DNA of 64,000 nucleotides, taken from sequence record NC_071039.1; one strand, given 5' to 3'. How positions within the stretch are numbered: position 1 is the stretch's first letter; each line of letters begins with the position of its first letter. The translations under genes were made by a program, and so were the position numbers. Under the pieces are notes generated by a model that worked only from the letters and a program-made list of their open reading frames with translations, did no database searches and was not told the DNA's origin. Shown here piece after piece: positions 4,015 to 63,889 of the stretch.

Positions 4015-4600
4015 TCTTATACTAGTAGATGTTGATGGTGTACTTTTAAAATGGTATCCCGAATTTTTAAATTTTTTGAAATCTAAAAACCTTATACCGC
4101 AAGATAGTAATATTGTTGCATCTACGTATGATATGGCATCTGACTTAAAATTAGATAAAGATGCTATTAATGAACTTATAACAGAGTTTAATAATTCTAG
4201 TGCAATGCGATATCTGTCTCCCATGGATAACGCAGTAGATGCTATTAATAAATTAAAAGATAAAGGATTTAGTTTTGTTGCTATTAGTAGCTTAAGTGGG
4301 AAAGAACATGCACTAGATAACAGAAAATACAATATCTCTGAAGTATTCGGCAAAGAAGTGTTTGATGAAGTCCACTGCATAGAGCCCGGACTAAGTAAAG
4401 AAGAATTGTTAAAGAAATATTCTAAAGATGCAATTCTCTGGATAGAAGACCATCCGGGTAATGCAGAATTAGGTCATAAACTCGGTATAAGAACTGTTCT
4501 TGCACTTCATCCTCATAATACAAATGTAAAAACTTCTAAAAATATTATAAGGATTGATATAGACAAACTTTGGACCGAAATAGAAAATATTGTAAACTAA
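4004..4600 (+). CDS. HAD-family 5'(3')-deoxyribonucleotidase-like phosphatase
   Basis: Motif I LVDVDGVL, ISS motif II, K..., WIEDHPGN motif IV. Start is GTG. Confidence 0.8.
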   Translation: MSNNLILVDVDGVLLKWYPEFLNFLKSKNLIPQDSNIVASTYDMASDLKLDKDAINELITEFNNSSAMRYLSPMDNAVDAINKLKDKGFSFVAISSLSGKEHALDNRKYNISEVFGKEVFDEVHCIEPGLSKEELLKKYSKDAILWIEDHPGNAELGHKLGIRTVLALHPHNTNVKTSKNIIRIDIDKLWTEIENIVN

Positions 4601-4602
4601 CA

Positions 4603-4636
4603 AAAATAAAACCCTAACTAGTTAGGGTTTTATTTT
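4603..4636. terminator. bidirectional terminator (perfect 34 bp palindrome)
   Basis: AAAATAAAACCCTAACTAGTTAGGGTTTTATTTT between convergent genes. Confidence 0.85.
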
Positions 4637-4654
4637 GGGTTTAATAATTAGACA

Positions 4655-4684
4655 AAATAAAAGGGGCATATGCCCCTTTTATTT
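4655..4684. terminator. bidirectional terminator (perfect palindrome)
   Basis: AAATAAAAGGGGCATATGCCCCTTTTATTT at the phoH stop. Confidence 0.85.
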
Positions 4685-5456
4685 AATTAATGTCCTTATA
4701 CATTTCTAAAATATCTTCAATCAGTGGATGACGTTTAATATCCTTTGAAGTAAATTTAATGACACTTATGTGTTTATTGCCGCCTGCTCTATCGAGTCTT
4801 TCTAAGAAATCTTTTAGTCCATTTACTTCGAAACCCCGATCGTGTTGCTCTATATCGCCAGTAACTATCATTTTACAATTCTCACCTATTCTTGAAAAAA
4901 GCATTTTAGACATGTTAGGCGTTGTATTCTGTATTTCGTCTGCTAATATAACACAATTTTTAAATGTTCTGCCTCTCATATATGCAAGGGGAGCAATTTC
5001 TATAATTTCTTCCATAAGCATTTGTTCTATTTCGACAGGGGAATAATATTCTTTAAACACATCCATTATTGGTATTACCCAAGGAGCCATTTTATCTATT
5101 AGCGTGCCTGGCAAAAAACCGTGTTCTTCGTCAACTGATACTGCTGGCCTAGTAATTACAATCTTATCGCATTTACCTTCTTTATATGCTTTAATTGCAT
5201 ACATAGATGCTAGTAATGTTTTTCCGGATCCCGCAGGACCTGTTGCAAATACAATGTGCTGTGTATCGTCTTCCAACGCGTCTACATATTCTTCTTGTGC
5301 TAAGCTTTTTGGTATTAGCTTAACTTCTTGTTTTCTTTGTATAGATCTTACTTGTTTAGTATTAGTAGACGGCTGAACAACATTGTTAGTTACTAGATGA
5401 AAGGTACTGTTAGGACCTTCGCTTGCTCGAGCTTTGCGCTTATCACGTTGTTTCAA
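4683..5456 (-). CDS. phoH: PhoH-family ATPase
   Basis: LIPKSLAQEEY, GPAGSGKT, ITRPAV, GFLPG, APLAYMRGRTF, DEIQN, GDIEQHD, RHPLI. TTG start with AGGAG SD (5465-5469). Confidence 0.95.
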   Translation of the reverse strand: MKQRDKRKARASEGPNSTFHLVTNNVVQPSTNTKQVRSIQRKQEVKLIPKSLAQEEYVDALEDDTQHIVFATGPAGSGKTLLASMYAIKAYKEGKCDKIVITRPAVSVDEEHGFLPGTLIDKMAPWVIPIMDVFKEYYSPVEIEQMLMEEIIEIAPLAYMRGRTFKNCVILADEIQNTTPNMSKMLFSRIGENCKMIVTGDIEQHDRGFEVNGLKDFLERLDRAGGNKHISVIKFTSKDIKRHPLIEDILEMYKDIN

Positions 5457-10407: not shown

Positions 10408-13400
10408 ATGAGTATACAATCAGGTCCTTCTGTATTAAATCAATTTGTTCCAGATTTTCTGATAGATAGTACACCAACTAATGGTCAATTTTTAGTTTAT
10501 GACGATACTGTCCAGGCATTTGTAAATAGCACAAATCCCAGAATCGTATTAGATTCGTCTAATATATTAGACGGTTCTATAACAATTGATAAACTTGCAA
10601 TATCTGGTAATAAAGTACCTGGATACGTACTAACTATAACTTCCGCAGGCGGAATGGCATTTTTACCAGTACCTGGCAGCGGCAGACAGCTACCTAGTCT
10701 AGGTGAATTACTAGACACAAATATAGTATCTCCTACTGTAACCCAATATCTTAAATGGGACGGTTCTGCATGGGTTAATAGTAATATAACGTTAAATGAT
10801 GTATCAGATGTCTCTGTTATCTCCCCTACAGCTGATGATGTATTAGCATGGGAATCAGGTTCTTGGACAAATAAGAAAATAGATTATACATCACTAACAA
10901 ACAAACCAGATTTGAGTGATGTAGTTAGATCTAGCGAATTGTCATCAGTTGCATTCAGTGGTGATTATAATGATTTAGTAAATATTCCCAGTGCAACTTC
11001 TAATACTATAGTTGGATTAACAGATGTTAACGATACTGCACTACCCAACGGATTCTTGCGCTGGAACGCAAGTGGTGATGAGGTAGAATTTATTACTTCA
11101 ATTTCTGCTACTGTAATAACCGGGTTAGCTCCAGTTGCTACTAGTGGAAATTATAATGACTTATTAGGAAAACCTAATTTGTCAGTGTATCCGCTTAGAA
11201 CTGAATTTTCCACTGTTGCAACCACCGGTAATTATTCTGATTTGAACAATGTGCCTTTGACATTTGCACCAAGTGCGCATACTCACCCGGCTGCACAAAT
11301 CACAGGATTGGCATCTGTAGCTACTAGCAACGATTATAACGATTTAGTTAATAAACCGACTGCAATGGCGCCAACCGCACATACGCATGCTATATCTGAT
11401 ATTATAGGATTGCAAAATTCGCTAGATAGTAAATTGACTGTCAATTTAACTACTAGACTTCCAAAAGATGTTATTTATTTTAACGGCACTTCATGGATAA
11501 ACAAGCAATTATCTTATACTGATATTTCCGGTACTCCTAACTTAGATAACTATGTTACTGATTCAGAATTATCTACTGTTGCTACAACTGGCAGATATTC
11601 TGATTTAATAAATAAACCCGAGTTAGTAGAAAATTTAAACGACTTATTAGACGTAGATGTTTCTTCTAAACAGACAGGGAACGTATTAACCTGGAACGGA
11701 ACAGCATGGGTTGCTAGTGCAATAACACAAGCAAGCATAGATTGGGCTAATATAAGCAATAAACCAAGCGTTTTTAGCCCCGCTGCGCATACACACGACG
11801 TAGTAGACGTACTAGGCCTGCAAAGTTTACTAGACAGCAAACTTGACGCAAATATTGCATTCGACGGCGATTATAATAGTTTAACAAATAAGCCGGGGTT
11901 AATAGATCTTCAAGATACATTTAGTCCTGCTGTACCTAATGGATTCTTACGGTGGAATAATTTAGGTACCTTAGTTGCATATCAAGATTACATATATCCG
12001 CAAGATATTTCAGGATTGTCAGATGTTGCTATATCGGGTCAGTATTCAGATTTATTGGGTACCCCTTCCTTATCGACTGTTGCTATAACCGGGAGTTATA
12101 GCGACTTAATTGATGCGCCGCCTGCGTTTGACGGCGATTATGATAGTTTAACAAATAAACCGTTTATTCCTACTAATTTTGATTTTAAATTTATAGGTTT
12201 GAATGATGTAAGTCCCACAGTTCAGCCCGGTGGCTATTTAAAATGGAACTTAGACGGTTCATTTGTTGTATCGTCAGCAAACATTCCTGCAACAGATGTA
12301 GCAGGATTGTCTGTTGTGTCTACAACCGGACAATATTCAGATTTATTAGGCAAACCGTTATTAGCTACAGTTTCTTCGTCGGGTAGTTATACTGATTTAA
12401 TAAATATTCCTACTGAATTTAATCCAGCCGAACATACCCACAATATAGCAGACGTATCAGGATTACAGGCATCCCTAGACAATAAATTAAATACCTCTGA
12501 TGCATTTAGTGGTGATTATAATGATTTAACCAACGCACCTACTAATAGTTCATATTCATTAGTGGGATTATCAGATACTAATTCTGTACCTGTTGCAAAC
12601 GGATTCTTACGCTGGAATGCATCTGGAAGTAGTGTTGAATATATTCAAACAATTCCTGTAAATGCAATAACTGGATTGGCTCCTGTCGCATCATCTGGCC
12701 AGTATGCAGATTTGCAAGGAACACCGGATTTATCTGACTATGTTTTATCTGTATCATTAGCTGACATAGCTACGACTGGAGAATATTCAGATTTAATAAA
12801 TGCACCCGATTTAAGTGTGTATGCTAATAAAACTGATCTGTCAGATGTAGCTACAACAGGACAATATTCGGATTTGTTGGGTATTCCTACGCAATTTACA
12901 CCGACAGTTCATGTCCATAACGTTTCTCAAATAAGTGGATTAGCTACTGTTGCTACTAGCGGAAGTTATGATGATTTATCTAATAAACCGTCGTTTGCTA
13001 ATGTTGCAACTACAGGCAGCTATGATGATCTAAACAATAAACCATCCATACCTACTAATGGCAGTTTTAGTTTACTTGGGTTAAATGATACAAATAATAC
13101 GCCAGTTGCAGATGGTATATTGCGTTGGAATTCCAGTGCAAATCAGGTAATATATGCAAATACAATCGATGCACAATCTGTTTCTGGATTAGCTACTGTT
13201 GCGACTATAGGTAAACTATCTTCATTAAGTGATGTAGATTTAATAGGGTTGAACCAGAATGAAATATTGCAATGGAACGGTTCTGCATGGGTACCTGTAC
13301 CTTATAATCCTAATCAAATACAAGCTTACATAGAGAGCGGAAATACAAAAGTTTCTACTAACGATATTTTAGATAGCATTGTTCTAACAGCAGGACCTAC

Positions 13401-16400
13401 CACTGGAAATATAATATTCGAGTTAGGAAATACAAATAGCTCAATTATTCTAAATCCAGTTGCTAATAACGTAGATGCTCTTATTTCTTCTACTTCTAGA
13501 ATAAAATTAGATTCATCTACTGGCATATCATTAGGTAATATAAGTTATCCAATGACCGACGGTACAGTTGGGCAAGCAGTAGTTACAAATGGAGCTGGCC
13601 AACTATCGTTTGAAACGGTAGTTAAACCCTCTCAATTGGCTACAGTTGCTACTAGTGGAAATTATAATGACTTAACTAATAAACCTACATTAGTAACTGA
13701 ACTAAACGGACTTGCTGACGTTCGTATGCGTGATACTAATGGAAATTATTTAGCACAACCAGAGGATGTGTTAACATATTCTAACGGAATATGGCAAGCA
13801 CGACCGAACACTAGTTCTTCTTTTATAGGTTTAAGCGATACCCAAAATATAACATTGCCAGAAGATAGGGCTAATGCATACTTACGTTGGGATACTACTG
13901 GAAATCTAATTATATACGAAGATAGTATTTCTGCAAGCGTAATTGCCGGATTAGCAGAAGTAGCAACCACAGGAGATTTGCACGATTTAATAAATGTAAA
14001 TGTAAATTTACCTGATATGAACAATCCAGCTACACAAGCTGTTTGGGGTTTAATATGGGATCGTCAGAATCAACGTTGGATAAATTACAATTTACGTAAT
14101 ATAGCAGGTTCGGGTGGATCTACAGTAGTAGCATTGAATGACTTAACTGATGTTACTCTTACTTTCCCTGTAGTTGACGGTAATGTTCTTAGAGCAACTG
14201 TGCAACCAGACAATAGTATTGTTTGGCAGAACAAACAACTATCTTATAGTGACTTAACTGGAACTATAAGTATGAGTCTGTTGCAATTAACTGATACTAG
14301 TTCATCTGCTGTACCTAATGGATTCTTGCGGTGGGATTCATCGGGTAGCACAGTTCAGTATATTACTACAATAAGTACAAATGATATAACTGGGTTAGCT
14401 CCGGTTGCTACCAGTGGAAATTATAATGACTTATCTAATAAACCTGCTATACCGGCATCAATTAACGATTTAGCAGATGTTAATACCGTTAATCCTGTTC
14501 CTACAAACGGATATGTATTAACATGGGATAGTAGTTCGAATAATTGGATTGCAAAAGAACCTGCAACTAACCCATCTGGTAGTACAGCCCTAGCTGATCT
14601 AACAGATGTATCTCTATCTGATCTAGCTGCTAGTGATGTTTTAAAATACAACGGCACTACATGGGTAAACGAACCAGTTACGTATTCTGAATTAACAGAT
14701 TTACCTACATTTGCGTTAGTTGCATTCAGTGGTGATTATAATGATTTAACTAATAAGCCATCGGGATCTACTACATCTATACTAGATCTAACTGACACTG
14801 CAGATACTGCACTACCCAACGGATTCTTGCGCTGGAACGCAAGCGGTGATGAGGTTTTATATCAATCATCTATTGATGTTTCTGATATAATAGGATTATC
14901 CGGTGTAGCTATAAGTGGTGATTATAACGATTTATCCAATAAACCGGAAAATAATTCGTATTATTTTAGAAAGTTAGCTGACGCAGGAAATCCGCAGCCT
15001 AATACATTTATAAAATATCCTGCGTTTACTATTCCGCCCGGTAGTGATATAGACGATGTTAATCCTATACTCGAATATGTAAGTAGCATAAATGCACTAA
15101 CTGACATAGATAACCTAGCTCCGGTTGCTACTAACGGAATACTAGGAAGTTTAGTAGACGTAAATCTAAATTCAGTAGAAGACGGACAAGTTCTTACTTA
15201 TGATGCTGTAACAAATAGCTGGATAAACAAAAATAGTTCAGGATCGCCGGTAGTAACTTCGTGGACAAAGATAAATGGCAACTATACTGTAACTGGCTCA
15301 GAATATTTATTGGTAGATACGACTTCTGCTAGTGTAACAATTACTCTGCCTGTTGCCCCTACCGAAAATATGGTAATTCGTATTGCTGATTGGAAAGGTA
15401 CATTTAGAACAAATAGTTGCGTAGTGAATACCAATGGCATGCCTTTAATGGGTGCTAGCATGGATAACACACTAACTATTCAGAACCAAAATGCAAGTAT
15501 AGAGTTAACATTTGTAGACACAACGTACGGTTGGAAAATAACAGATGGTATAGGTGAGATATCTAAACAAAACATTCCAGTTACGAACTGGCGTACTGTG
15601 GATTCATCTAGCACTCCTGCTATGCTAATAGCTCAACCGGGCGAAGCAATTTATGTTAATACCAACAATGGTGCAGTAACTGTTAAATTACCGACAGGAG
15701 CAAGTGTTAACGCTGTTGTCAGAATAGCTGACTTGTTAGGTACTTACGATAAAGCAAGTTGCTTTGTAGATGGCAACGGCAACCCAATAATGGGTAAAAA
15801 CGAAATATTAGAAATTGCAAACGAAAATGCTTCTATAGAATTTACATACGTCGATTCGGTAGTCGGGTGGAAAGTAACAGACGGCATAGGTGAGTTAGGT
15901 AGAAAAACTGATATTGCATCTGATTCGGATATAATAGTTTATGTAGCTACAGACGGTAACGACACTACAGGAAGTGGAACCGAAGAATCTCCATTTGCTA
16001 CATTAAATGCTGCTTTCCTTAGTCTAGATGGCAAATTTGTAAATAGTTCTGCAGAAATTATAGTTCGTGTTGCAGAAGGTGTCTACGAACCTACCAATCC
16101 TGTTGCGTTTAGTCACATTCAGGGAATGAATGTAAAACTTATAGGCGAATTGCCCCAAGCAAGTAGTTCATTCACTGTTACTAATATAACCAATGATGCA
16201 GGATTGGCAAAAGTAACAATGCAACTTTCTTCTGTCAGTGACTACGAAGTAGGGGACATTATAAAGATTACGTCGGCAGCAACTATGTTAGAATGTGTTG
16301 AAATTATAACAGCAATAAACACAGGATCTAATACTTTAGAGATAGTAATTCCTAATAGTGTATTAGCCGATGTATCTGACTATACTGGGTACACCGGAAC

Positions 16401-27324: not shown

Positions 27325-28272
27325 ATGTTGAAAATAAAAGGAAGTCCATCCGTAGGCAAAATATCAGCAACAATTAATAGACCGTTTTTAACTAAAACCT
27401 TAGTTACTACGATGCCACAGAACATTGCAAATTTTACTGCAGGGTACGGAGGTGGAATGTTGCATATATTCGGAGGCGAAGCTGTTCCTAGTGTGGGCCA
27501 AATACAAATATATAGACGATACAATATAGCAACTAATACGTGGTTAAGTCCTAGCGGAAACATAGGAGCCTGGGCATGGGGAGGCGGTGGCTATTACAAT
27601 GGAAGTTTTTGGGCGCTGTGTGGTTCTAACAATGGATATAATACTTCGTATTTTCAGATAAACCCTTCCACTGCAACAGGTACACGATATACAGATATGG
27701 CTGGCGGTTCTAGAGGACAAGGAAGAACCGCATCAGTAGATAATCTAAACGTATTTGTTATAGGGGGTATTGGGCAAAATAATATAACAAATGCATTGTG
27801 TTATAGATTTAATGCTAGTACAAGAGCATGGACAGTAAGAACAAGTATGCCATCGCCAAGAAATGGTCATACGATAGGATCGTATAACGGGAAAATATAT
27901 GTACTAGGAGGCTGGAACGAAACCTCAAACAATCTTTCAGACGTTCTAGAATACAACATATCTACTAATACGTGGACAACTTTACCCACTACAATTCCGG
28001 GAGCACCTTCTAGCTGGTTCGGTGGGTTTGTATATAAACAATATGCTGTATACGGCGCGTCATCTTCTTCTAATACGCTTTTATTTAAAATATTAGATTT
28101 AAATAAAATGACATGGGAAATTTTAGATACCGGGTTGCCTCGCCGCTGGTCTGCAGAATATGTAGTTACAGAAACCGGTGTATATATGATAGGCGGTAGT
28201 AGTTCTTATCCTGGCGCTGCCAACTATTTTACTGCCCCCAGATATAACGAAATATATTTCTTTAAAGGTTAA
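27325..28272 (+). CDS. Kelch-repeat beta-propeller protein
   Basis: Repeated LHIFGG, VFVIGG, IYVLGG and VYMIGG with ...YN..TNTW blades. Confidence 0.85.
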   Translation: MLKIKGSPSVGKISATINRPFLTKTLVTTMPQNIANFTAGYGGGMLHIFGGEAVPSVGQIQIYRRYNIATNTWLSPSGNIGAWAWGGGGYYNGSFWALCGSNNGYNTSYFQINPSTATGTRYTDMAGGSRGQGRTASVDNLNVFVIGGIGQNNITNALCYRFNASTRAWTVRTSMPSPRNGHTIGSYNGKIYVLGGWNETSNNLSDVLEYNISTNTWTTLPTTIPGAPSSWFGGFVYKQYAVYGASSSSNTLLFKILDLNKMTWEILDTGLPRRWSAEYVVTETGVYMIGGSSSYPGAANYFTAPRYNEIYFFKG

Positions 28273-30265: not shown

Positions 30266-30541
30266 ATGACTGACATTAATCCAAATTCTCGCCACTACTC
30301 TGCTGAAGACGTCCGGCGAATTAAACAGTTAGTTTCTGAAGGCATGCAAGTCATGCAAGAAATTGAAGATTTAAAAACCGGACTAGCAGAAACAGTTAAA
30401 GCAATTGCAGAAGAAGTAAATGTTAAGCCTTCCCAGCTTAATAAAGTTATTAAAATCGCACATAAACGTTCTTTAAACGAAGAACTAGATAAGATTAACG
30501 AAGTAGAAGAGATTCTAGACGCAATTAAAGAAGGTCGTTAA
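30266..30541 (+). CDS. T4 DsbA-like / GapR-like double-stranded DNA-binding protein
   Basis: Helical pattern IKQLVSEG...IEDLK...VKAIAEEVNVKPSQLNKVIKIAHK resembles T4 DsbA. ATG 30266 with GGAG SD preferred over 30242. Confidence 0.55.
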   Translation: MTDINPNSRHYSAEDVRRIKQLVSEGMQVMQEIEDLKTGLAETVKAIAEEVNVKPSQLNKVIKIAHKRSLNEELDKINEVEEILDAIKEGR

Positions 30542-30594: not shown

Positions 30595-33006
30595 ATGTAC
30601 ATCGATATTTTCGAAGATAAGAAAAATGAAATACTTCTAGTTGCAGAACGATCTGCAGGCAAACGAATATACAAACAATACCCTATAGATCATACATATT
30701 ACATATTAGATGCAAACGGACCGTATAAAGATATATTCGGTAATAATGCTAAAGCCATTAAGCCATCTAGCATAAATGAAAAAATGACTCAAATGAAAAT
30801 GCTAGATTTTTCGCAAACGTGCGAAATAGACGTCAGGCCAGAATTTAGATGCTTGGAAGTAAACTATAAGAATGCACCTATGCCAAATTTGCATGTTGCA
30901 TTCTTCGATATCGAGACCGCGTTTGATCAAAAACGCGGTTATGCCGACCCGGCTGATCCTTTTAATCCCATTATATCAATATCTGTATATTTGCAATGGA
31001 TGCAGCAAATGGTTTGCTTAGCATTAGCACCGGAGACTATATTACCAGAAGATGCACAACGCATAGCATCAGAAGTAGGCGAAACAATTATATGTAAAAA
31101 TGAAAAAGAAATGCTAAGTATGTTTATTGACTTAGTAGAAGATGCAGATATTTTATCAGGTTGGAACTCAGAACGTTTCGATATTCCTTATACTTTTAAC
31201 AGAATTGTAAAATTATTAGGTAAGAATGAACTAAGAAAATTATGCCTTTGGAATCTTATGCCCAAGAAGCGCAATATTGAACAAGAAGGCGGCAGTAGTT
31301 TTGTTACATTCGAAACGTTTGGTAGAATACATTTAGATTATCTTCAATTATATAAAAAATATAATTACGAAGAACGTCATAGTTACTCGTTAGATTCTAT
31401 TTCGGAAATCGAACTAGGTGAACGAAAAGTTCCATACAACGGAACATTAGACAAACTTTATAAATATGATTTTAAAAAGTTTTTAGAATATAACATTCAG
31501 GATACTCGACTCCTAGATAAGTTAGATAGAAAATTAAAATATATAGATCTAGCTTCCACCATTGCACATAGTAATTGCATTCCTATCCCTACTGTTATGG
31601 GTGCAGTAGCTACAACCGAACAAGCAATTATAATCGAAGCACATAATAACGGCATGGTAGTGCCATCTAGGCAACGTTTTAAAAATAATGATACACTTAA
31701 AGCTGCGGGCGGTTGGGTAGCATATCCTAAAGTAGGACTGCATAGAGATATTGGCTCCAGTGACTTAAATTCTCTGTATCCTTCTGTGTTAAGGGCACTA
31801 AACATGAGCCCAGAAACTATTGTAGGACAAGTTCGGTTAACACTTACTAACCCTGCAATCGAAGAATGGTGTGCAAAAGGCGGAACAAAACATACATTTG
31901 CTGCATGGTGGAACGATAGGTTTACCACTTTAGAAATGGAATATGTGTTAAACAAAGACAGGGGTACTATATTAACGTTAGATATGGCAGACGGGCGTTC
32001 GTTTGAACTGTCAGGTGCCGAAATATACGAATTAGTATTCAACAGTGGTCAGAATTGGCATATCAGTGCTAACGGAACTATATTTACACAAGACAGAGCA
32101 GGTGTAATTCCGTTACTACTTACAAGATGGTATGCAGAACGTAAAGGGATGCAGAAAATTGCATCAGATTATAATTCTTTAGATAAAGAACACCATAGCG
32201 ACAAAACTGTATTTTTAGAAGATAAATCAGTATTAGATGGAATATGCGTAGGCGAAGTTGAATTAGCAGACCATTATAATATTAATGATGTATATGTTGC
32301 AGCTACATTAAAAAATCTTGTCGAATCAAAAAATTGGCAAGAAGTAGCAATATATATGAAAAAGTATGGACTAGAAGTGTCGTCTGACAATTCAATTGTT
32401 ATGTCAGATTCCCATATGCAAAACGAATATTACGAATATTGGGATAAAGCCCAGTTAGTTCGTAAAATTGGATTAAACAGCTTATATGGCGGACTACTTA
32501 ACGAACATTCTAGATTCTACGATAAAAGACTAGGACAGAGTACTACACTTACTGGGCGCTGTATCACTAGACATATGGCTTCTAAAACAAACGAAATGTT
32601 TACTGGCATTTACGATCATGAAGGCGATTGTGTAATTTATGGCGATACAGATAGTGTAGATGGATCAACTATCCTAAATACTTCTCTAGGTAAAATAACT
32701 ATAGAAGAATTGTTTAATGTGTCTGACAAGCATGTAGTTCATGCAGAAAAAGAATTTGCTTCGAATGAAGATGTTATGGTAATGTCGTGGGACAATTCTG
32801 CAAAACAACCATATATGGGGCATATAAACTATGTGTACCGCCACGAAGTAGAAAAAGAGCTATTCGAAATAGAAGACAACAGCGGAAATAAAGTTATAGT
32901 AACCGAAGATCATTCTATTATGGTTATACGTAACGCAGAACTTCTAGAGGTTAAACCCACAGATTTAACAGATAGTGATATAATATTATCTATTGTATAT
33001 GAATAA
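30595..33006 (+). CDS. family B DNA polymerase, N-terminal half, fused to split-intein N part
   Basis: Exo I FFDIET, Exo II SGWNSERFDIPY, Exo III YNIQD, motif A DLNSLYPS, motif B KIGLNSLYG, motif C YGDTD, then the sequence turns into an intein N-half and stops. ATG 30595 (TAGGA SD) preferred over GTG 30559. Confidence 0.95.
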   Translation: MYIDIFEDKKNEILLVAERSAGKRIYKQYPIDHTYYILDANGPYKDIFGNNAKAIKPSSINEKMTQMKMLDFSQTCEIDVRPEFRCLEVNYKNAPMPNLHVAFFDIETAFDQKRGYADPADPFNPIISISVYLQWMQQMVCLALAPETILPEDAQRIASEVGETIICKNEKEMLSMFIDLVEDADILSGWNSERFDIPYTFNRIVKLLGKNELRKLCLWNLMPKKRNIEQEGGSSFVTFETFGRIHLDYLQLYKKYNYEERHSYSLDSISEIELGERKVPYNGTLDKLYKYDFKKFLEYNIQDTRLLDKLDRKLKYIDLASTIAHSNCIPIPTVMGAVATTEQAIIIEAHNNGMVVPSRQRFKNNDTLKAAGGWVAYPKVGLHRDIGSSDLNSLYPSVLRALNMSPETIVGQVRLTLTNPAIEEWCAKGGTKHTFAAWWNDRFTTLEMEYVLNKDRGTILTLDMADGRSFELSGAEIYELVFNSGQNWHISANGTIFTQDRAGVIPLLLTRWYAERKGMQKIASDYNSLDKEHHSDKTVFLEDKSVLDGICVGEVELADHYNINDVYVAATLKNLVESKNWQEVAIYMKKYGLEVSSDNSIVMSDSHMQNEYYEYWDKAQLVRKIGLNSLYGGLLNEHSRFYDKRLGQSTTLTGRCITRHMASKTNEMFTGIYDHEGDCVIYGDTDSVDGSTILNTSLGKITIEELFNVSDKHVVHAEKEFASNEDVMVMSWDNSAKQPYMGHINYVYRHEVEKELFEIEDNSGNKVIVTEDHSIMVIRNAELLEVKPTDLTDSDIILSIVYE
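32653..33003 (+). mobile_element. split intein N-fragment (117 aa)
   Basis: Starts SVDGSTIL directly after YGDTD (block A), KITIEELF, and block B VIVTEDHSIMV, followed by the stop codon. Confidence 0.9.
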
Positions 33007-45921: not shown

Positions 45922-46215
45922 ATGGCACGTCCAAAACCTACTATCCTTGTTGAACATGTAGATCCAAAAACATATAAATCTGAGCAAATACTCGAAGCTG
46001 AAGCTGTGTTTGCTGTATTTTATAAAGGCGAGCCTATCAATATACGGTCACAGAGTGCATTGATAGATTATGCTCCTAAATATAAGAAATCTACATTTGT
46101 TAACCCGGGCCATGCACTTAATTTGGCTGAACGTTTAAATGAAATGTTTAAATGCACTGACTTTACTGTTCATAAATTAATTGCAGGAGAAAAATACACC
46201 GGTGAAGAATACTAA
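45922..46215 (+). CDS. hypothetical phage protein
   Basis: 97 aa, GGAG SD, GATAAATA at 45887-45894 upstream. Confidence 0.75.
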   Translation: MARPKPTILVEHVDPKTYKSEQILEAEAVFAVFYKGEPINIRSQSALIDYAPKYKKSTFVNPGHALNLAERLNEMFKCTDFTVHKLIAGEKYTGEEY

Positions 46216-46552
46216 GCTTAGAGATTCAATTTTCTCTTATTTAAGAGAAAATAACGAATCTTTAACTGAGTTAACAGATATAGAACTTAATCGTTTTATA
46301 TTTGCACACCCTTCTAGTTTTAGACTGTCGTATGATGGTCTAAAACTATTTTCAAAACTATTCACTTCTTATACCTACCATATAGATTTTAAAATAACTT
46401 TCAGACAAAGATTGCTATTAGGTAGGCATCTAAAATTTCCTTATTATTTTAGTGATAAAAGATTAATATTGTTTTCATACGACGATTCTTTATATTTAAA
46501 TTTAATAGGCGATATAAAACTCTGGTTAGAATCGTTCGAACATAGTGTTTGA
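46181..46552 (+). CDS. hypothetical protein
   Basis: ORF overlapping the previous gene; the real start may be GTG 46202. Confidence 0.65.
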   Translation: MQEKNTPVKNTKLRDSIFSYLRENNESLTELTDIELNRFIFAHPSSFRLSYDGLKLFSKLFTSYTYHIDFKITFRQRLLLGRHLKFPYYFSDKRLILFSYDDSLYLNLIGDIKLWLESFEHSV

Positions 46553-47338: not shown

Positions 47339-47875
47339 ATGAAATATTACACTAAATGGTTTTTAATGACACACAGAAATAAAATGTATGATTTTAAGAA
47401 TCTATCATTTTATATATTACTAGTAGGAAATGTAGTTTTTAATCCTATTATAGCGAGTTTCTTAATTATTCTCAAAATAATGCAATTATTGCAAAATAAA
47501 CCAGAATATTTAGATACTATCCCTGTGCTTAATGAAGTATTTTATATGTTTGTTGCTGAGTTAGTTTCTATATCTTATCGGTTTATAAATAAAACACCCG
47601 ATTATGAAATATTTCATTCTTCGTTTAACAAAAGAAAACCAAAACAACATAAAAATAATACATGTAAAAAAAGAAATGATCGCTGTATCGGGGAAGAAAC
47701 AATTAGCAATAAAAGATCATCATTTTATAATACAGGTGTTAAACTATATAAAGACAGCAAAGATAAAAGAAAACGATATGCTTATCCTAGGCAATCCGGT
47801 CCGCTGAGCCCCTGCTGGTATCCTACATTTAGACTTCCTAAATATTTTAAGAGAAAAAAGAAAAAAGGGCTATAA
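47339..47875 (+). CDS. hypothetical protein (hydrophobic N-terminus, basic C-terminus)
   Basis: 178 aa ORF ending in the terminator AAAAAGGGC-TATAATT-GCCCTTTTT (about 47863-47887). Confidence 0.45.
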   Translation: MKYYTKWFLMTHRNKMYDFKNLSFYILLVGNVVFNPIIASFLIILKIMQLLQNKPEYLDTIPVLNEVFYMFVAELVSISYRFINKTPDYEIFHSSFNKRKPKQHKNNTCKKRNDRCIGEETISNKRSSFYNTGVKLYKDSKDKRKRYAYPRQSGPLSPCWYPTFRLPKYFKRKKKKGL

Positions 47876-48077
47876 TTGCCCTTTTTTAATGATTAAAAAA
47901 TTACGTTTTACTATGTTGACTAACTATATAGTTATTTGCTTTAATAACATCCTGCTTTGCAAAACAACAAATAATAGCATTCATAAAAATTGTTAATTAT
48001 GTGTTGTTTTAAAAGCTACAAGCTGTAAAATGTAGGTGTTAAACAGCAAAACATATTCAACCACAGAGGCATTATAG

Positions 48078-49193
48078 ATGGCTAAAAAAGAAAACATCGT
48101 AGAAACGTATCTTCGTCCGACGGAGTGTGCTGCAATTATCCGCGGCATGTTCAAGGCGAAGCGTCCTGTGTTCCTCTGGGGTCCGCCGGGGGTAGGCAAG
48201 TCGGATATCATCGCCCAGTTGGGTTTCGAGGCTGACCGGCCGGTCATCGACATGCGTCTGATCCTCATGGATCCCACTGATATTAAGGGCATTCCGTACT
48301 ACGATCCGAAAACCAATACCATGCGCTGGGCTATTCCGTCCGATCTTCCGCAACCCGGCGAAACTACCCTGGACAACGCCATCCTGTTCCTGGACGAAAT
48401 GAACTCGGCGCCGGCGAGCGTGCAGGGCGCTGCGTATCAGCTCATCCTGAACCGTGCTATCGGTTCGTATAAGCTGCCCGATGGCGTCGACATTGTCGCT
48501 GCTGGTAACCGCGATACCGACAAGGGCGTTACTTATCGTATGCCTAGTCCGTTGGCCAACCGTTTCGTTCACTTGCAGATCGAAACCAACTTCGAGGACT
48601 GGCAGCAGTGGGCGCTTAACAACACGGTACACCCGGATGTAGTTGGCTACCTCACCCAGCACAAGCAGAACCTGTTCTGCTTCGATCCCCAAGATCGTAG
48701 CAAGGCGTTTGCTACTCCGCGAGCTTGGAAGTTCGTGTCCGACATCCTCCAACTCGCAGGAATCAACAAGGACCATCTGCTACGTGCGACTATCGCAGGA
48801 ACCGTCGGCGAAAGTCACAGCTACTCCTTCATGCAGCACATGAAGTATGCTTCGCAGCTTCCGAAGCCGGAAGATGTACTAACCGGCCGGGTAACCGATC
48901 TCAAAGTCGAAGAGATCAGTGCTCGTTACTCGCTCGTGGTCAGTATGTGCTACACTCTAAAAGAGTGGCTGGCTGACGTAGCTGACGCCGACAAAAAGTA
49001 CACTACCGAGGATTGGCACAAGTCGGTAAACTTGTTCTTCGAGTACATGATGAACAACTTTGCCCAAGAAATGGTCATCCTCGGCGCGCGTACTGCGTTG
49101 CGCGAATACCAACTGCCGATCAACAGAAAGTTGATCCCTTGCTTCACTAAGTTCTTCCAAGAGTACGGCAAGTTTATTGTCGACTCGAACTAA
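48078..49193 (+). CDS. MoxR-type AAA+ ATPase
   Basis: Walker A GPPGVGKS, IDMRL...DPTDIKG, Walker B LFLDEMN, AAGNR, PLANRF, TPRAW. Markedly GC-richer than its flanks. Confidence 0.9.
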   Translation: MAKKENIVETYLRPTECAAIIRGMFKAKRPVFLWGPPGVGKSDIIAQLGFEADRPVIDMRLILMDPTDIKGIPYYDPKTNTMRWAIPSDLPQPGETTLDNAILFLDEMNSAPASVQGAAYQLILNRAIGSYKLPDGVDIVAAGNRDTDKGVTYRMPSPLANRFVHLQIETNFEDWQQWALNNTVHPDVVGYLTQHKQNLFCFDPQDRSKAFATPRAWKFVSDILQLAGINKDHLLRATIAGTVGESHSYSFMQHMKYASQLPKPEDVLTGRVTDLKVEEISARYSLVVSMCYTLKEWLADVADADKKYTTEDWHKSVNLFFEYMMNNFAQEMVILGARTALREYQLPINRKLIPCFTKFFQEYGKFIVDSN

Positions 49194-49201
49194 GTAAGGG
49201 C

Positions 49202-49234
49202 AAAATAAAAGGGGCTTAAAGCCCCTTTTATTTT
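49202..49234. terminator. bidirectional terminator
   Basis: AAAATAAAAGGGGCT-TAA-AGCCCCTTTTATTTT. Confidence 0.85.
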
Positions 49235-49262
49235 ATATATTCATAGGATACAGAATTATAGA

Positions 49263-49718
49263 ATGAGAACACTAACTTCATCTTTGTTTGTCATTATAAT
49301 GACATTAGTAAATATCCTTTCTGTAATATATATGTATGTTACTAATGTGCCATTAATTTATATGCTTGTTGCAGTTCCTAATCAGTGTGTTATATCATTA
49401 ATTTCTTGTGTATACAGAAAAATCATAGCAGAATTTTTTTATATAAAGAGATTTAGTTTTTATAAACTAGAAGTCGTTTTAGACAAGCAAAGAGGGAGCT
49501 CAACAAAATATATTTTAAAATTAAATGTATTAGGTGAAACATATTATTACGATTTTCATGACAATCCTTTTTGCTGTCTTCCTATTTATGCGAATTTCTA
49601 TACTAATTCAGAATCATTGGCACTTAACACATTCCAAAGGTATGAAGACCAAGCTGAGCTATATAAAAAGAGCAGCGCCATTACTACTGTAATAAAATCT
49701 AGTAAAGGTACTAAGTAG
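49263..49718 (+). CDS. membrane-anchored hypothetical protein
   Basis: Two N-terminal hydrophobic helices followed by a soluble domain. Confidence 0.6.
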   Translation: MRTLTSSLFVIIMTLVNILSVIYMYVTNVPLIYMLVAVPNQCVISLISCVYRKIIAEFFYIKRFSFYKLEVVLDKQRGSSTKYILKLNVLGETYYYDFHDNPFCCLPIYANFYTNSESLALNTFQRYEDQAELYKKSSAITTVIKSSKGTK

Positions 49719-59086: not shown

Positions 59087-59979
59087 TAGTTTCGGGGACC
59101 TTTAAGTTTTGCTAGTACATGTTGTTCTGACCCAGCCAAATGAGGGAAGATCTTTATAAGTTTGTTCCAGTACGAATACGGCAAAAAATCGAGATTTATA
59201 TAATCTAAATATTTTATAGAATTACTATGCAACCTATTCCTCGAAAGTATAGTCAATATATGTCGTCCTGCTATATAAGACCAATCTATATTTTTAAGAA
59301 ATGTAATACAACTGTCAGTAGACATTGTCTGACCATTTGCTTTATGCATATAGAATAGCGAAGACATCCTTTCAAAAAGAAACCAGTGATATTGTTTATT
59401 TTTAGAAATAGTATCAAACCCTACAAATTTTACATATTCTTCAAAAACAGAATATCTTTTACTACAAAAAAAATTAAATACTGTTTTATCCAACAAAACG
59501 TTATGTCGTTTTAATTCTTTTAAAATAAGTCTTACTATGTTTAAATCAGGTAAAGATTGTATGGTACACAATTGCGTTATTATATCTTTAGATAATGCTT
59601 TTCTCGGTTTTAAATTCTTTAAAACAACATAAAATAATTTATGACATGTTATAGGAACTTTCATAGGAAACATTGAATTTGAAAATTTTCCAATACATTG
59701 CCTGACAAGATATAAATCTTCTTTACTTATAGATCTGTTATATTCACTAATAGAAGATGAATAATTACTTGATATAAAGTTTACTAATTTGGGACTTTTA
59801 ATTTCCATAAGAACATTCAATACAGTAGCATTGAACGGTATATATTCAACATCAATAGAATTACAGACTGCAATTAGTGCATCTTTAGCTGAATTATTAG
59901 CAATTGTTATTTCTTTATTTTTTCTAAATTTAATGAAATATTCTAATTCACTTAAAGCTTTAATGTAACTAATATCCAT
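59086..59979 (-). CDS. hypothetical helical protein (paralogue family)
   Basis: 297 aa; C-terminal YWNKLIKIFPHL...KLKGPR. Confidence 0.65.
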   Translation of the reverse strand: MDISYIKALSELEYFIKFRKNKEITIANNSAKDALIAVCNSIDVEYIPFNATVLNVLMEIKSPKLVNFISSNYSSSISEYNRSISKEDLYLVRQCIGKFSNSMFPMKVPITCHKLFYVVLKNLKPRKALSKDIITQLCTIQSLPDLNIVRLILKELKRHNVLLDKTVFNFFCSKRYSVFEEYVKFVGFDTISKNKQYHWFLFERMSSLFYMHKANGQTMSTDSCITFLKNIDWSYIAGRHILTILSRNRLHSNSIKYLDYINLDFLPYSYWNKLIKIFPHLAGSEQHVLAKLKGPRN

Positions 59980-60005
59980 ACATATACCGTAAAAATTTTT
60001 ACCAT

Positions 60006-60034
60006 ACTATAAAATATGTATATTCAATAGTCAA
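60006..60034 (-). promoter_or_regulatory. sigma70-type promoter for the minus-strand operon
   Basis: Minus-strand TTGACT-N17-TATAGT. Confidence 0.7.
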
Positions 60035-60068
60035 CTGTGTTTGGTAACAAAATGTGGTAATTAGGCAC

Positions 60069-60097
60069 TTGACATTGGTATTGTCTTTTAGTAAACT
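60069..60097 (+). promoter_or_regulatory. sigma70-type promoter driving the ORF-free structured region
   Basis: TTGACA (60069-60074), 17 nt spacer, TAAACT (60092-60097). Confidence 0.75.
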
Positions 60098-60103
60098 GTG
60101 CGC

Positions 60104-60852
60104 TTGCGTAAGAAATGTATATACGATAGTGCTATATGTATATACAGACAAGTGGCTCTGTTCCATTATTGGATATTGGTAGTAGAAACTATCCCCATCG
60201 TGCTGTTATTGTAGTTCCGATAGTGTCGGGTTAACGTTTTAACAGTTATTTAAATTATGATTTTGGGTGCCACAGAGATTGTACTTACTAAAAGGACTTA
60301 GTAAGAACCGCATATAATCTCGAAACTTGTGTAGGATGTTGGTCTAACCACGGCATAGAATATATGCCTCAACTACTACACGGAAAGGATGATGCTCTGG
60401 TCGAAACAGAGTTTCTATAAATCTTTCAGTATAGATTCCGTATGGCTGAAAGTTGAAACACCAACATCAATAGACTATAGTTTTTGTTAGTGTGGCTATA
60501 GTTTATTCCGGCATTGAAAGTATATACAGTGATGCGAGACAGTAAGCATTAGTAGCAACTGTATATATGAGTAAGAGGATGCGTTTACAATGAGGAATTA
60601 CCTATCGGTGCCCGCCTCAGGGATTGCACTTCCCAACGTACACTAAACTTCGTACCATACCGAAACATAAGTTTCTGTTATTACGATTTCCTTCCCAAAC
60701 GGGGAGGAAATCTTCTCCGCCCGAATATCATAAGATCAAAAGCATTAATAATTAATATATAAAATTCGTTTAATTAGTTATTAAGTATATGAGTTGTAGT
60801 TTACGAAAACGAATATACTTAATAACTACCAGTGAAGCTTGCTTCGCTGTTT
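60104..60852 (+). ncRNA. candidate large structured non-coding RNA (about 750 nt), family unknown
   Basis: No ORF of 60 aa or more in any frame; visibly GC-richer than the AT-rich stretch that follows; many local and long-range helices; promoter in front and hairpin plus TTT at the end. Boundaries approximate. Confidence 0.6.
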
Positions 60853-60944
60853 AAAATTGCAATTTGTATTTTCAATTTTATATTTCGAAATGTGTTTTTG
60901 AAAATCAATCTATAAAATATAATTTTAAATATTATTTTTAAATG

Positions 60945-61031
60945 TCATTTTGTGATTTTAATTTAAAATACTATTTCATAATTTAAAATGGAAATATATT
61001 AAACAATATCATTTTGTGATTTTAATTTAAA
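60945..61031. repeat. 23 bp direct repeat pair in an extremely AT-rich region
   Basis: TCATTTTGTGATTTTAATTTAAA at 60945-60967 and 61009-61031. Confidence 0.85.
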
Positions 61032-61082
61032 CAATTCCATATAAAACTATTTTGTCTATTTCTTTTATAATCTTAAAGTCAT

Positions 61083-61110
61083 TAAAAACCCTACGTTTGT
61101 AGGGTTTTTA
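61083..61110. terminator. bidirectional terminator
   Basis: TAAAAACCCTAC-GTTT-GTAGGGTTTTTA. Confidence 0.8.
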
Positions 61111-61788
61111 TTTGATTATATTGTATTCGGTTCAAGACATTTAGATTATTATAATTAATAATATCTGTATGATAATTTTATTTTATAGAAATACATTTAC
61201 TAATTACATTTATCAATGAATGGTTATTTTCTTTATATTTAATGCGTCTCAGGGTATATAGCAAATATGATAAATCAAGACACATAATATATTGTGTCTA
61301 TATTTTTAATTTCATTAATCTACATAATTGTTTATTAATGTATACAGTTATATACGTTATGTTGTAATAACAAACTAAATTATATAGAGAATACACATTA
61401 AATTCTGTTTTGTGTCGAATCGACATTACATATATCATTATGTATTGATATTTGCTGTATATAAAAATAGTTAATTATTATGTGCTTTAGAAGAACTCCA
61501 TTATAATTAGTTTTCTGTGTCATATTCAAATGATGAAAAACATAATTCTTTCATCTATTTTTATTAAATGTTATTCAAGATTTATAATATAATTTTATAA
61601 TGTTTGCAATTTATGACACAAGCTATTTTAATAGAATTATACTATTCAAAGTTTTGACTTATTTTGTGTGTAAACGACAAAAATAGGCATATATAAAAAG
61701 CACACCTGTTTCCTGTATGAAACAAAATAGTATTTTATTAAAAATAGTGTATAGTAGTAAAAAACATCATTAATCATGCACGCAATTT

Positions 61789-62010
61789 ATGGCAAACGTA
61801 ATTAAAGAACTTCATCCTATTAAAGGATATTGCATAGTTGTGCGTCATCCAGGCGATACTAGATTTAGCTGGGTATCGCTAGATAATCAATATATTTTGG
61901 TAGACAATCCAGTATTTTTAAATGATGAATTTGACAATTGTAAAAACGAATGGCCAGATGCTGAAATAAAAATAGTAGAAGTGTATGTTGTCCCGGAGAA
62001 GGTGTTATGA
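61789..62010 (+). CDS. small hypothetical protein
   Basis: 73 aa; paralogous to the next ORF. Confidence 0.6.
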   Translation: MANVIKELHPIKGYCIVVRHPGDTRFSWVSLDNQYILVDNPVFLNDEFDNCKNEWPDAEIKIVEVYVVPEKVL

Positions 62011-62734: not shown

Positions 62735-63889
62735 ATGAGTCAGATGTACGTAACTATCACTAACGGAATGTACCGTAACCAGCAAGTAAACGGCACATTC
62801 CTTTTACTTGAAGATGTGAAAGTTACTGGGTCGGGAAAACGAGTTATTAACGTATTAGGCGCATTGCCGGAATGGTCTCAACATAAATGTAGAGTTACAC
62901 TCGGTAATGACGCAACAGTACAGTATTCGAACGAACAAGGAGAGGTTTTAGATTTGCCTAATGTTATACGTCCGTTTGTGGGCGAAAATAATAATAATGT
63001 TCCTGCATCTAGTCGCGGTACAGTGTATGAAGGCACCGCAGTAGAAATTGACTACGAAAAGCAATACCAACAACTAGAATCCGAAAACGATGCAATGAAT
63101 CGTATCAAACGGACCTTTGAGATTGTAAATGAACTAACAGAAGCTGCCGCAGCAGGCGAAATCCGTTCTATGATCATCTCCGGTCCTCCCGGAATCGGAA
63201 AAAGTTTCGGTGTAGAAGAAACACTAAACAGGTGTTTCTTGTTGGATAAAATTAAAGATAATAAAGAACCGTTTGAGATCGTAAAGGGCGCTGCAAGTGC
63301 AATTGGTGTTTACCAAAAGCTTTACGAATTTAAAGATAAAGGTAAAATCCTTATTTTCGATGATTGCGACCGCGTACTATTTGACGAAGATAGTCTAAAT
63401 CTCCTTAAAGGTGCATTAGATACTACTAAGCGTAGAACTATTTACTGGCTTAGTGAGTCCCGTGTTTTAAAAGAAAATGATATTCCACCTAAATTCGATT
63501 TCGAAGGTAGTGTAATTTTCCTTACTAACCTTAACTTCGAGGATACAAAGTCCCGAATCGGAAGGCACCTAGAAGCAATTATGTCCCGGTGTCATTATTT
63601 AGACATGGAAATTAGTAGTACGAGAGACCAGATCCTTCGTATTAAACAAGTTGTGCGCGACGGGATGCTTAGTAAATATGAATTTAATAACGGAGAAGAT
63701 GAAGAAATCCTAGAATACATCATCGATAATCAGAATGATCTGCGAGAACTTAGCTTGCGTATGGTAATTAAAATTGCCGATCTGATTAAATTCAAAAAAG
63801 ATGGTTGGCGAGAATATGCAGAGACAACTGTACTGAAACGGAATGCAAAATTCCGGCGGCTGTATAACGAAAAGTACAGTGATATTTAA
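62735..63889 (+). CDS. AAA+ ATPase of unknown function
   Basis: Walker A SGPPGIGKS, Walker B LIFDDCD, FLTN, IMSRC, LRELSLR. Confidence 0.85.
   Translation: MSQMYVTITNGMYRNQQVNGTFLLLEDVKVTGSGKRVINVLGALPEWSQHKCRVTLGNDATVQYSNEQGEVLDLPNVIRPFVGENNNNVPASSRGTVYEGTAVEIDYEKQYQQLESENDAMNRIKRTFEIVNELTEAAAAGEIRSMIISGPPGIGKSFGVEETLNRCFLLDKIKDNKEPFEIVKGAASAIGVYQKLYEFKDKGKILIFDDCDRVLFDEDSLNLLKGALDTTKRRTIYWLSESRVLKENDIPPKFDFEGSVIFLTNLNFEDTKSRIGRHLEAIMSRCHYLDMEISSTRDQILRIKQVVRDGMLSKYEFNNGEDEEILEYIIDNQNDLRELSLRMVIKIADLIKFKKDGWREYAETTVLKRNAKFRRLYNEKYSDI

Follow-up and report, generated by a model that had tools for sequence, protein, structure and literature searches.

A three-copy family of large structured non-coding RNA genes in Pseudomonas phage PA5oct and other Wroclawvirus genomes

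Phages of the genus Wroclawvirus carry what we regard, with high confidence, as a functional family of structured-RNA genes with three diverged copies that share a common fold. The family was recognized in a 64,000-nucleotide (nt) stretch of sequence record NC_071039.1 (the window; positions refer to it unless record coordinates are given), in which an initial annotation had flagged positions 60069-60852 as a candidate undescribed structured RNA of a jumbo phage. The assignment to a jumbo phage was correct: the window is 100% identical to Pseudomonas phage vB_PaeM_PA5oct (MK797984.1; record coordinate = window + 186000), a 287-kb member of the genus Wroclawvirus that its authors proposed as a model jumbo phage and phage-therapy candidate (PMC7318152). 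The flagged locus, here termed copy A, is also present in ten further records with 98.5-100% identity, which together provide ten distinct Wroclawvirus genomes.

The transcript of this locus is already known. The PA5oct record contains ncRNA004, a putative long non-coding RNA (lncRNA), inside the flagged stretch and on the same strand, and the PA5oct study lists it among four transcribed regions without plausible open reading frames (ORFs) (PMC7318152). A plus-strand non-coding transcript of the locus has thus been published (GenBank; PMC7318152), and the label "undescribed" fails for the transcript but holds, in the sources searched, for its structure, paralogues, and family status. New are the family, its three-copy organization, the promoters, and the covariation-supported fold, all of which are absent from Rfam 15, the PA5oct paper, and full-text literature searches. 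The evidence supports a stand-alone gene for a folded non-coding RNA at 60069-60852 that corresponds to ncRNA004 plus its promoter. It belongs to a new family within the large structured phage-encoded RNAs, with members of 0.75-1.2 kb.

Three paralogous RNA genes in the PA5oct genome

Searches of the 287-kb genome with a profile hidden Markov model (HMM; nhmmer) and a covariance model of the conserved 5′ core identified exactly three paralogous loci, A, B, and C, and no further copy. The covariance model scored 160, 156, and 142 bits for the three copies and at most 17.5 bits elsewhere in the genome. Copy B was detected by blastn through a 128-nt match of window 60148-60270 to record 12897-13024 (79% identity, E = 1e-25), while copy C was recovered as collinear pieces at record ~75985-77011 (best E = 4e-32, nhmmer). 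Copies A and B are ~52% identical overall, very unevenly along their length. All three copies occur in every Wroclawvirus genome, B with 97.6-98.4% and C with 99.6-99.7% identity.

Homology between the three loci begins at the promoter and stops at the terminal hairpin, and the duplicated unit is therefore a gene. Every copy has its promoter followed by a 5′ hairpin, an invariant core of several helices, peripheral hairpins that vary, and further hairpins at the 3′ end. The bodies of all three have a GC content of 0.36, compared with 0.333 for the genome; copy A (GC 0.35-0.40) stands out from its flanks (0.16-0.27).

Since the HMM and the covariance model find three loci only, ncRNA001-003 of PA5oct are unrelated to the family; ncRNA003 resembles it neither in sequence nor in core structure. 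Like copies A and C, ncRNA003 directly follows a block of minus-strand genes and lies at a local GC-skew minimum. Its coordinates are record 103065..103668 in GenBank versus 103065...103368 in Table 1 of the paper. An A+T-rich word of ~20-26 nt from the 3′ linker of copy B (record 13492-13517) recurs at three further sites of the long terminal repeat, on both strands (record ~27520-27550, 30466-30491, and 31347-31367).

A common fold supported by compensatory changes

Ten orthologous genomes by themselves cannot establish a fold: RNAalifold detected no compensatory pairs among the ten copy A orthologues, a shallow set. The minimum free energy structure of copy A alone was not relied on, because it contains long-range helices that natural variants disrupt. 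Beyond such single-genome folding, the paralogues supply independent evidence for the fold and a consensus for a covariance model, for mutants, and for a partner search. The initial annotation had named covarying homologues as decisive, and two diverged paralogues in the same genome covary with copy A.

In the MAFFT alignment of the 5′ core, 99.6% of the cells are paired, compared with 35-57% when partners are slid (RNAalifold, pair counting), and four pairs are changed on both sides versus 0-1 in the slid controls. The closing helix Pa reads GUGGC/GCCAC, CAGC/GCUG, and GCAGC/GCUGC in A, B, and C, respectively, and the outer helix of P2 reads CUGUU/AACAG, CCCAC/GUGGG, and CCUUU/AAAGG. Two blocks of the core, 60170-60203 (34 nt) and 60245-60270 (26 nt), are identical in all three copies. 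Because they flank the diverged P2 hairpin, they appear to be held by selection and not by gene conversion.

Downstream of the core, P3 has an outer helix built from GAGAUUGUA/UAUAAUCUC (copy A), GUAUAGUC/GACUAUGC (copy B), or GAACAC/GUGUUC (copy C) and an apical loop that contains GGA in every copy. The P4 interval forms a 12-bp helix in B and an 8-bp helix in C, both different in sequence from A. A profile of the P5 region matches the three copies only (E = 6e-9 to 1.5e-7). Conserved anchors beyond the 5′ blocks are AAAGGAUG..GCUCUGGU.GAAA, ACCAAC, UUCCGG, and UGAG(G)...CCCCGC(C)UC. P7 begins 5 nt past ACCAAC and finishes at UUCCGG in each copy; its strands are UAGACU.../...AGUUUA (copy A), CAUUGAUGU/ACAUCGAUG (copy B), and CCGCAG/CUGCGG (copy C). 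Between the anchors the sequences are unalignable, yet each interval is a hairpin whose closing helix abuts the anchors.

When the helices were aligned by hand from their bases, 60 of the 80 pair columns contained compensatory double changes. Pairs within a copy are canonical in 234 of 240 cases, compared with 259 of 480 if the 5′ strand of one copy is combined with the 3′ strand of another. Because this alignment was hand-made, we added an anchor-interval test that is independent of the drawn helices. Closing helices of 5-12 bp were found in all 12 cases (four anchor-defined intervals in three copies; each p = 0.0002-0.056 against shuffles), with a combined p of 3.6e-15 against shuffles of the same intervals.

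Every stem listed in the initial annotation is present in copy A at the positions given there, and most are backed by the comparison with the paralogues: GAGATTGTA/TATAATCTC with CTTACTAA/TTAGTAAG, GCTCTG/CAGAGT, GACTATAG/CTATAGTT, TGAGG/CCTCA, GTGTAG/CTACAC, the 12-bp hairpin, the 16-bp stem, and the terminal hairpin. The proposed long-range helix CCGATAG/CTATCGG is not supported as conserved, its 5′ arm lying inside the covarying local hairpin P2i (P2 inner). Of the suggested pseudoknot, the GTGTAG/CTACAC arm survives; the GATGTTGGT/ACCAACATC arm does not, as ACCAAC itself is conserved and no partner keeps its position across the copies. All elements of the fold are compiled in Table 1.

Table 1. 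Positions of the three gene copies and of the structural elements of copy A
Feature	Position	Strand	Remarks
ncRNA004 (EST35_0353, "putative lncRNA")	60116-60734 (record 246116..246734)	+	MK797984.1, "annotation based on RNA-Seq data"
Copy B	record ~12832-13600		unannotated ~910-nt gap in the long terminal repeat; blastn
Copy C	record ~75798-77030		beneath three tiny annotated coding sequences; nhmmer
Sigma-70-type promoter, TTGACA (60069-74), 17 nt, TAAACT (60092-97)	60069-60097	+	promoter scan, 10/12
5′ leader hairpin UGUAUAUAC / GUAUAUACA	60116-60145	+	sequence specific for A; leaders of B and C carry other hairpins
Conserved 5′ core, closed by helix Pa (60152-56/60269-73)	60152-60273	+	RNAalifold, pair counts
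P1a (60162-65/60170-73); P1b (60178-83/60188-93); Pb CCCA/UGGG (60194-97/60264-67)	within 5′ core	+	
P2 (60202-08/60240-46), inner hairpin (60216-20/60226-30)	within 5′ core	+	
P3: outer helix 60275-83/60313-21, inner helix 60284-91/60298-305, apical loop AAGGAC 60292-97	60275-60321	+	
Junction GAAAC	60322-60326	+	GAAAC in B, GAAGU in C
P4: UUGUGUAG/CUACACGG around hairpin GGCAUA/UAUGCC	60327-60383	+	inner hairpin specific for A
Conserved AAAGGAUG junction, then P5 (GCUCUG 60394-99/CAGAGU 60407-12, loop GUCGAAA)	60384-60412	+	
P6: CUUUCAG/CUGAAAG, 16-nt loop	60423-60452	+	hairpins here in B and C too
Conserved ACCAAC	60460-60465	+	no partner conserved in position
P7 (60469-82/60494-507), then conserved UUCCGG (60506-11)	60469-60511	+	
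P8 hairpin GUAUAUACAGU.../...ACUGUAUAUAU	60520-60568	+	RNAalifold
P9: UGAGG ... CCCGCCUCA	60591-60619	+	motif UGAG(G)...CCCCGC(C)UC in all copies
P10: 12-bp G+C-rich hairpin	60685-60712	+	B (UAUUUCUCCCG/CGGGAGAAUAU) and C (GCAUCUACCCC/GGGGUAGAUGU) have hairpins that differ in sequence
P11: 16-bp A+U hairpin	60775-60828	+	32-nt apical part identical in copy C
P12: terminal hairpin CAGUGAAG-CUUG-CUUCGCUG (60830-49), then UUU	60830-60852	+	weak as terminator

Folding stability and strand

Folding of the plus strand of 60100-60852 yields -224.1 kcal/mol, compared with -172.4 ± 6.0 for dinucleotide shuffles (z = -8.6), the control against which the initial annotation had wanted its proposal measured; the minus strand reaches z = -6.75. 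Across copies A, B, and C, the plus-strand z ranges from -8.0 to -9.8, and the plus strand is the more stable one in all three. When the window is scanned in 250-nt tiles, the background z is -1.2 ± 1.7, and the three consecutive tiles over copy A reach -2.8, -4.7, and -5.9. In other parts of the window, a small number of single tiles fall below those of copy A, which is marked by a run of stable tiles and not by one extreme value. These tiles (47850-48099, 46100-46349, 4600-4849, and 49100-49349) have z values of -6 to -8, below any copy A tile; the first covers the 200 nt that separate gp334 from gp335, and the other three lie in or beside coding sequence.

The aligned helices of the three copies contain nine G-U pairs and no A-C pair, in line with the argument of the initial annotation that G-U pairs point to RNA. 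This tolerance of G-U without A-C, together with the strand asymmetry in stability, indicates an RNA of the plus strand. The same evidence bears on a repeated DNA element, that is, a regulatory region, a homing-endonuclease site, or a selfish repeat that is transcribed incidentally and whose hairpins matter in DNA. Perfectly conserved blocks of 26-34 bp, several homing endonuclease genes in the phage, and the low abundance of ncRNA004 would all fit such an element, but it would account neither for compensatory changes that maintain pairing within each copy nor for the absence of A-C pairs and the consistently higher stability of the plus strand. In addition, the homologous unit extends from promoter to terminal hairpin as a gene does, and terminal inverted repeats or target duplications were not noticed on reading, although no systematic search for them was made. 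We therefore consider a DNA element very improbable.

Sequence constraint without a reading frame

The ten Wroclawvirus genomes were aligned over 6.9 kb. Within the RNA body (60100-60734), 2.8% of the columns are variable. The corresponding values are 9.9% for four-fold degenerate sites in the flanking genes (Fisher p = 9e-7), 11.2% for the A+T-rich spacer next to the body (p = 2e-10), and 2.4% for codon positions 1 and 2. Judged from this alignment, copy A is constrained about as strongly as amino-acid-determining positions, but not as a protein. In copy B, too, the body varies far less than the flanks.

The fold shared by the three copies makes the polymorphisms of copy A understandable. According to a hand tally, about eight of the 22 polymorphic sites keep their pair by wobble, one breaks a pair (U60330G in P4), and the rest are unpaired. 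Variants 60526 and 60532 in P8 retain their pairs as G-U, and 60619 in P9 keeps its pair as well. Three variants (60436, 60441, and 60445) fall within the P6 loop, and the others in loops or linkers. These data support selection on base pairing and a few single-stranded motifs, not on any reading frame.

As the initial annotation had noted, 60069-60852 contains no ORF of at least 60 amino acids (aa). The longest ORFs near copy A comprise 55 aa (59999-60166, minus strand, overlapping its start) and 43 aa, and every frame across the copy carries 10-19 stops. Small-ORF substitutions among the ten genomes are all non-synonymous or stop-creating, and a 33-codon ORF at 60389 acquires a stop in four of them. 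No Pfam or PHROG family was matched by the ORF products of copy A, and the frames that start from a shared AUG at 60255 comprise 14, 7, and 50 codons in the three paralogues, as read from the sequence.

Several records (Cassandra, Ettore, Deifobo, Paride, PAC2) contain calls of coding sequences (CDS) of 30-55 aa over A, B, and C, and in PA5oct EST35_0143-0145 are small CDS calls over copy C (record 75920-76516). Because the length of homologous frames is not the same from one paralogue to the next, and stops accumulate in them, these calls are likely to be spurious. Such records imply a decayed protein gene or several clustered genes for very small proteins, a reading that could appeal to CDS of 30-50 aa called by other annotators and to a GC content of 0.36 that resembles coding DNA. 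Against it stand the stops in each frame, the nature of the substitutions, the unequal lengths of the homologous frames, the lack of family matches, and a conservation that equals codon positions 1 and 2 without any frame to go with it, so that we give this explanation almost no credence. Our analysis corrects the annotation in two respects: several records place small proteins on these loci, and two of the three genes lack an annotation as RNA.

Promoters, transcription, and 3′ ends

The promoter proposed in the initial annotation, TTGACA-N17-TAAACT, is present as described and is the best plus-strand sigma-70 match within 59800-61900. Copy B carries TTGACA-17-TATAAT at the equivalent position (read from sequence), and copy C the same elements plus an extended TG (12/12). 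PA5oct depends on the RNA polymerase of the host, for which rifampicin sensitivity was reported, and promoters of the type TTGAC/TATAATA have been described for it, while the ncRNA regions were said to be without known promoters (PMC7318152). The sigma-70 promoter of copy A fits this published dependence, and with it the initially assumed expression by the host enzyme. The share of ncRNA004 among phage reads is 0.08, 0.03, and 0.02% at 5, 15, and 25 min (early, middle, and late), and is thus highest early (Table 1 of PMC7318152).

At the other end of the gene, P12 failed a terminator scan, and the terminal hairpins of B and C have no U run. The first canonical terminator downstream of the copy A RNA gene is a strong hairpin at 61083-61110. 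Since P12 is not a canonical terminator in any copy and a strong one follows only at that distance, the stable RNA species may be processed. The hairpin at 61083-61110 consists of a 12-bp stem with a 5′ A run and a 3′ T run and is bidirectional in appearance.

Searches for relatives

The initial annotation could not place the RNA in any family, and the Rfam check, run on the window and on copies A, B, and C, gave the same result: nothing reached the gathering score in the whole window, and at E values up to 10 all three copies yielded terminator-like noise only. ARAGORN found no tRNA or tmRNA in the window. No homologue beyond Wroclawvirus was found by blastn against phages, plasmids, and E. 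coli genomes. Exact and degenerate word scans of IMG/VR (six patterns), metagenomes, and GTDB genomes, which have little power for distant homologues, returned none or chance matches. Antisense matches of the three RNAs elsewhere in the PA5oct genome are short and at chance level.

Synteny as a route to distant relatives failed as well. The divergently transcribed neighbor gp352 is an ORFan confined to Wroclawvirus (5.8 billion proteins; phage tblastn), and gp359 is a widespread NrdC.10-like ATPase and as such useless for synteny. Pfam domains are absent from the neighbor proteins except for the AAA domain of gp359. The latter gene (62735-63889) is annotated as "thioredoxin"; its product carries an AAA ATPase domain and is homologous to T4 NrdC.10 (~30% identity over 95% of the length, hundreds of T4-like phages), so that the product name looks wrong on these similarities.

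Possible function

We propose that the host RNA polymerase transcribes the RNA gene from its sigma-70-type promoter, with the highest share early, and that the RNA would work in trans, as a decoy or scaffold, with a conserved core that would display invariant single-stranded elements to a protein or ribonucleoprotein partner. These elements are GAAAC, ACCAAC, and AAAGGA, a Shine-Dalgarno-like motif that is present twice, in or beside the P3 hairpin and at the P4/P5 junction. Shine-Dalgarno-like GGA motifs are recognized by regulators of the CsrA/RsmA type and by the 30S subunit. The best candidate partner would be a host GGA-binding translational regulator such as RsmA/RsmN, with the 30S subunit and Hfq as alternatives. 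AAAGGA occurs exactly twice in each copy (z = 5). One motif is always located in the P4/P5 junction and the other in the P3 apical loop (A, C) or the P3 internal loop (B), where the apical loop carries AGGAUA instead. Two such sites would suit a dimer. The mechanism is a guess, and on its own we rate it as tentative and rather unlikely. For the complete explanation, an RNA gene family that acts as a trans scaffold or decoy, we lean slightly toward acceptance, a rating that is a compromise between those of its two parts.

A number of observations speak against this interpretation. With regard to the fold, the 80-column helix alignment was made by hand, the anchors of the closing-helix test were picked after the sequences had been seen, and the covariation rests on three lineages only, because no homologue beyond the genus turned up in the searched collections. 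With regard to the transcript, the reported abundance of ncRNA004 is low (0.08-0.02% of phage reads), its annotated 3′ end (60734) falls short of the conserved P11 and P12, and copies B and C are not annotated as ncRNAs; we infer their transcription from their promoters and, for C, also from the small CDS calls. With regard to the mechanism, two conserved GGA motifs per 0.75-1.2 kb are sparse for a sponge, Rfam gives no match to RsmY/Z, CrcZ, or 6S, no partner protein is encoded beside all three copies, and the decoy idea leaves the large invariant core unexplained.

Bacteria and phages have few large RNAs in which many helices are conserved, and those with worked-out roles include ribozymes, ribonucleoprotein cores, and elaborate assemblies. 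Possibly the three paralogues stand for a class of large phage RNA (0.75-1.2 kb) not seen before, with a conserved tertiary core of some complexity and a sophisticated activity exerted alone or together with host machinery: a new ribozyme, an RNA-only assembly, or a device that captures a global host regulator or the ribosome early in jumbo-phage infection; the variable arms might then have given the copies different specificities. We consider this to be less likely than the opposite by a clear measure. Another explanation is a self-sufficient RNA machine, either a ribozyme or an RNA-only multimer of the ROOL/GOLLD type, in which the invariant core would be the catalytic or assembly center and palindromes (CCGG in UUCCGG; UUUAAA in the 60245-70 block) would mediate intermolecular contacts. 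It draws on the size of 0.75-1.2 kb, the many helices, the multi-way junction, and the phage origin, on a primary sequence that is invariant between copies otherwise ~50% identical, and on the lack of a protein partner encoded in cis: no protein family is common to the neighborhoods of all three copies. On the other hand, no Rfam ribozyme, intron, ROOL, or GOLLD model matches at E up to 10, and on reading the sequence we found few GNRA loops and no recognizable receptor motif, which makes such a machine unlikely.

Surroundings of copy A

Copy A is followed by a 936-nt spacer (60853-61788) that is the A+T-richest DNA of the 287-kb genome, with a GC content of 0.176 in the richest 500-nt window and 0.198 overall. 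Between the ten genomes this spacer is hypervariable, with 11% variable columns and indels in addition, and it is located at a local minimum of cumulative GC skew. It may function as an unwinding element or an origin; alternatively, the region may be in decay.

This arrangement suggests a further explanation, a cis-acting replication element whose transcripts, started at the strong promoter, would enter the downstream A+T-rich DNA and prime or activate an origin, analogous to the R-loop origins of T4, the primary origin of T7, or RNA II of ColE1; three copies would then be three origins. Copies A and C both lie at local minima of cumulative GC skew, P12 is a weak terminator, and the phage encodes RNase H. 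But a promoter that directs transcription into extended A+T-rich DNA, as expected of an origin, is seen for copy A only (936 nt, GC 0.198), whereas B and C are separated from the next gene by a spacer of just 120-150 nt. Moreover, the GC-skew minima are found where the gene strand switches, the spacer after copy A is hypervariable, and selection preserves ~20 RNA helices over 750 nt that a primer would not need. We judge an origin function improbable, even more so than an RNA machine, and keep the trans-acting RNA as our leading guess.

Two repeats were observed around copy A. The 24-nt direct repeat ATCATTTTGTGATTTTAATTTAAA occurs at 60944-60967 and 61008-61031 within the A+T-rich spacer, 64 nt apart, and looks like an iteron or operator. 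The motif TGTATATWCRATAGT is found three times (60017-60032, 60116-60131, and 60210-60225; spacing 99 and 94 nt), the first overlapping a leftward promoter-like sequence before gp352 (TTGACT-17-TATAGT, 60034-60006). It may be the site of a shared regulator at divergent promoters.

Comparison with known RNA systems

The closest published entity is ncRNA004 of PA5oct itself (Lood et al. 2020), which occupies the same locus and strand and was defined by RNA-seq coverage without an ORF. That annotation comprises coordinates and read shares only, with no promoter, structure, or paralogues.

Group I and group II introns and small self-cleaving ribozymes can be compared at the level of Rfam models, none of which matched any copy at E up to 10. 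Such introns also sit inside a host gene with exons, whereas each PA5oct copy is intergenic and has its own promoter.

The Csr/Rsm sponges (CsrB, RsmY, RsmZ) resemble the PA5oct RNAs in that GGA (AAGGA/AGGAU) is presented both by the loop of a hairpin and by a single-stranded junction, at positions that stay constant as the stems covary. Sponges of this type carry about seven to twenty GGA motifs in 120-350 nt, but the PA5oct RNAs have only two conserved motifs in 750-1200 nt. The total number of GGA in copy A, ~10 per 750 nt by hand count, is near the expectation from base composition. The PA5oct RNAs also lack a match to the RsmY, RsmZ, and CsrB models and possess a much larger invariant core, which a sponge would not need.

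The pRNA of phi29 is a phage-encoded structured non-coding RNA that is transcribed by the host polymerase from an early promoter and acts as RNA. The PA5oct RNA is likewise phage-encoded, non-coding, and structured, and has a host-type promoter. While pRNA is a single-copy RNA of ~120-174 nt that works at the packaging motor, nothing in our analysis ties the PA5oct RNAs to packaging.

GOLLD and ROOL, ornate RNAs frequently found in phages and prophages, resemble the PA5oct family in being large (~600 nt or more), highly structured, phage-borne, and free of an obligate adjacent protein gene. They differ in that copies A, B, and C do not match their Rfam models at E up to 10 and in genomic context, since GOLLD and ROOL are often adjacent to tRNA genes and the PA5oct copies are not (the tRNA cluster is at record 267558-271782). 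Homo-oligomeric cage assembly is a further trait of GOLLD and ROOL. Finally, the PA5oct family comprises three paralogues per genome and is known from a single phage genus only.

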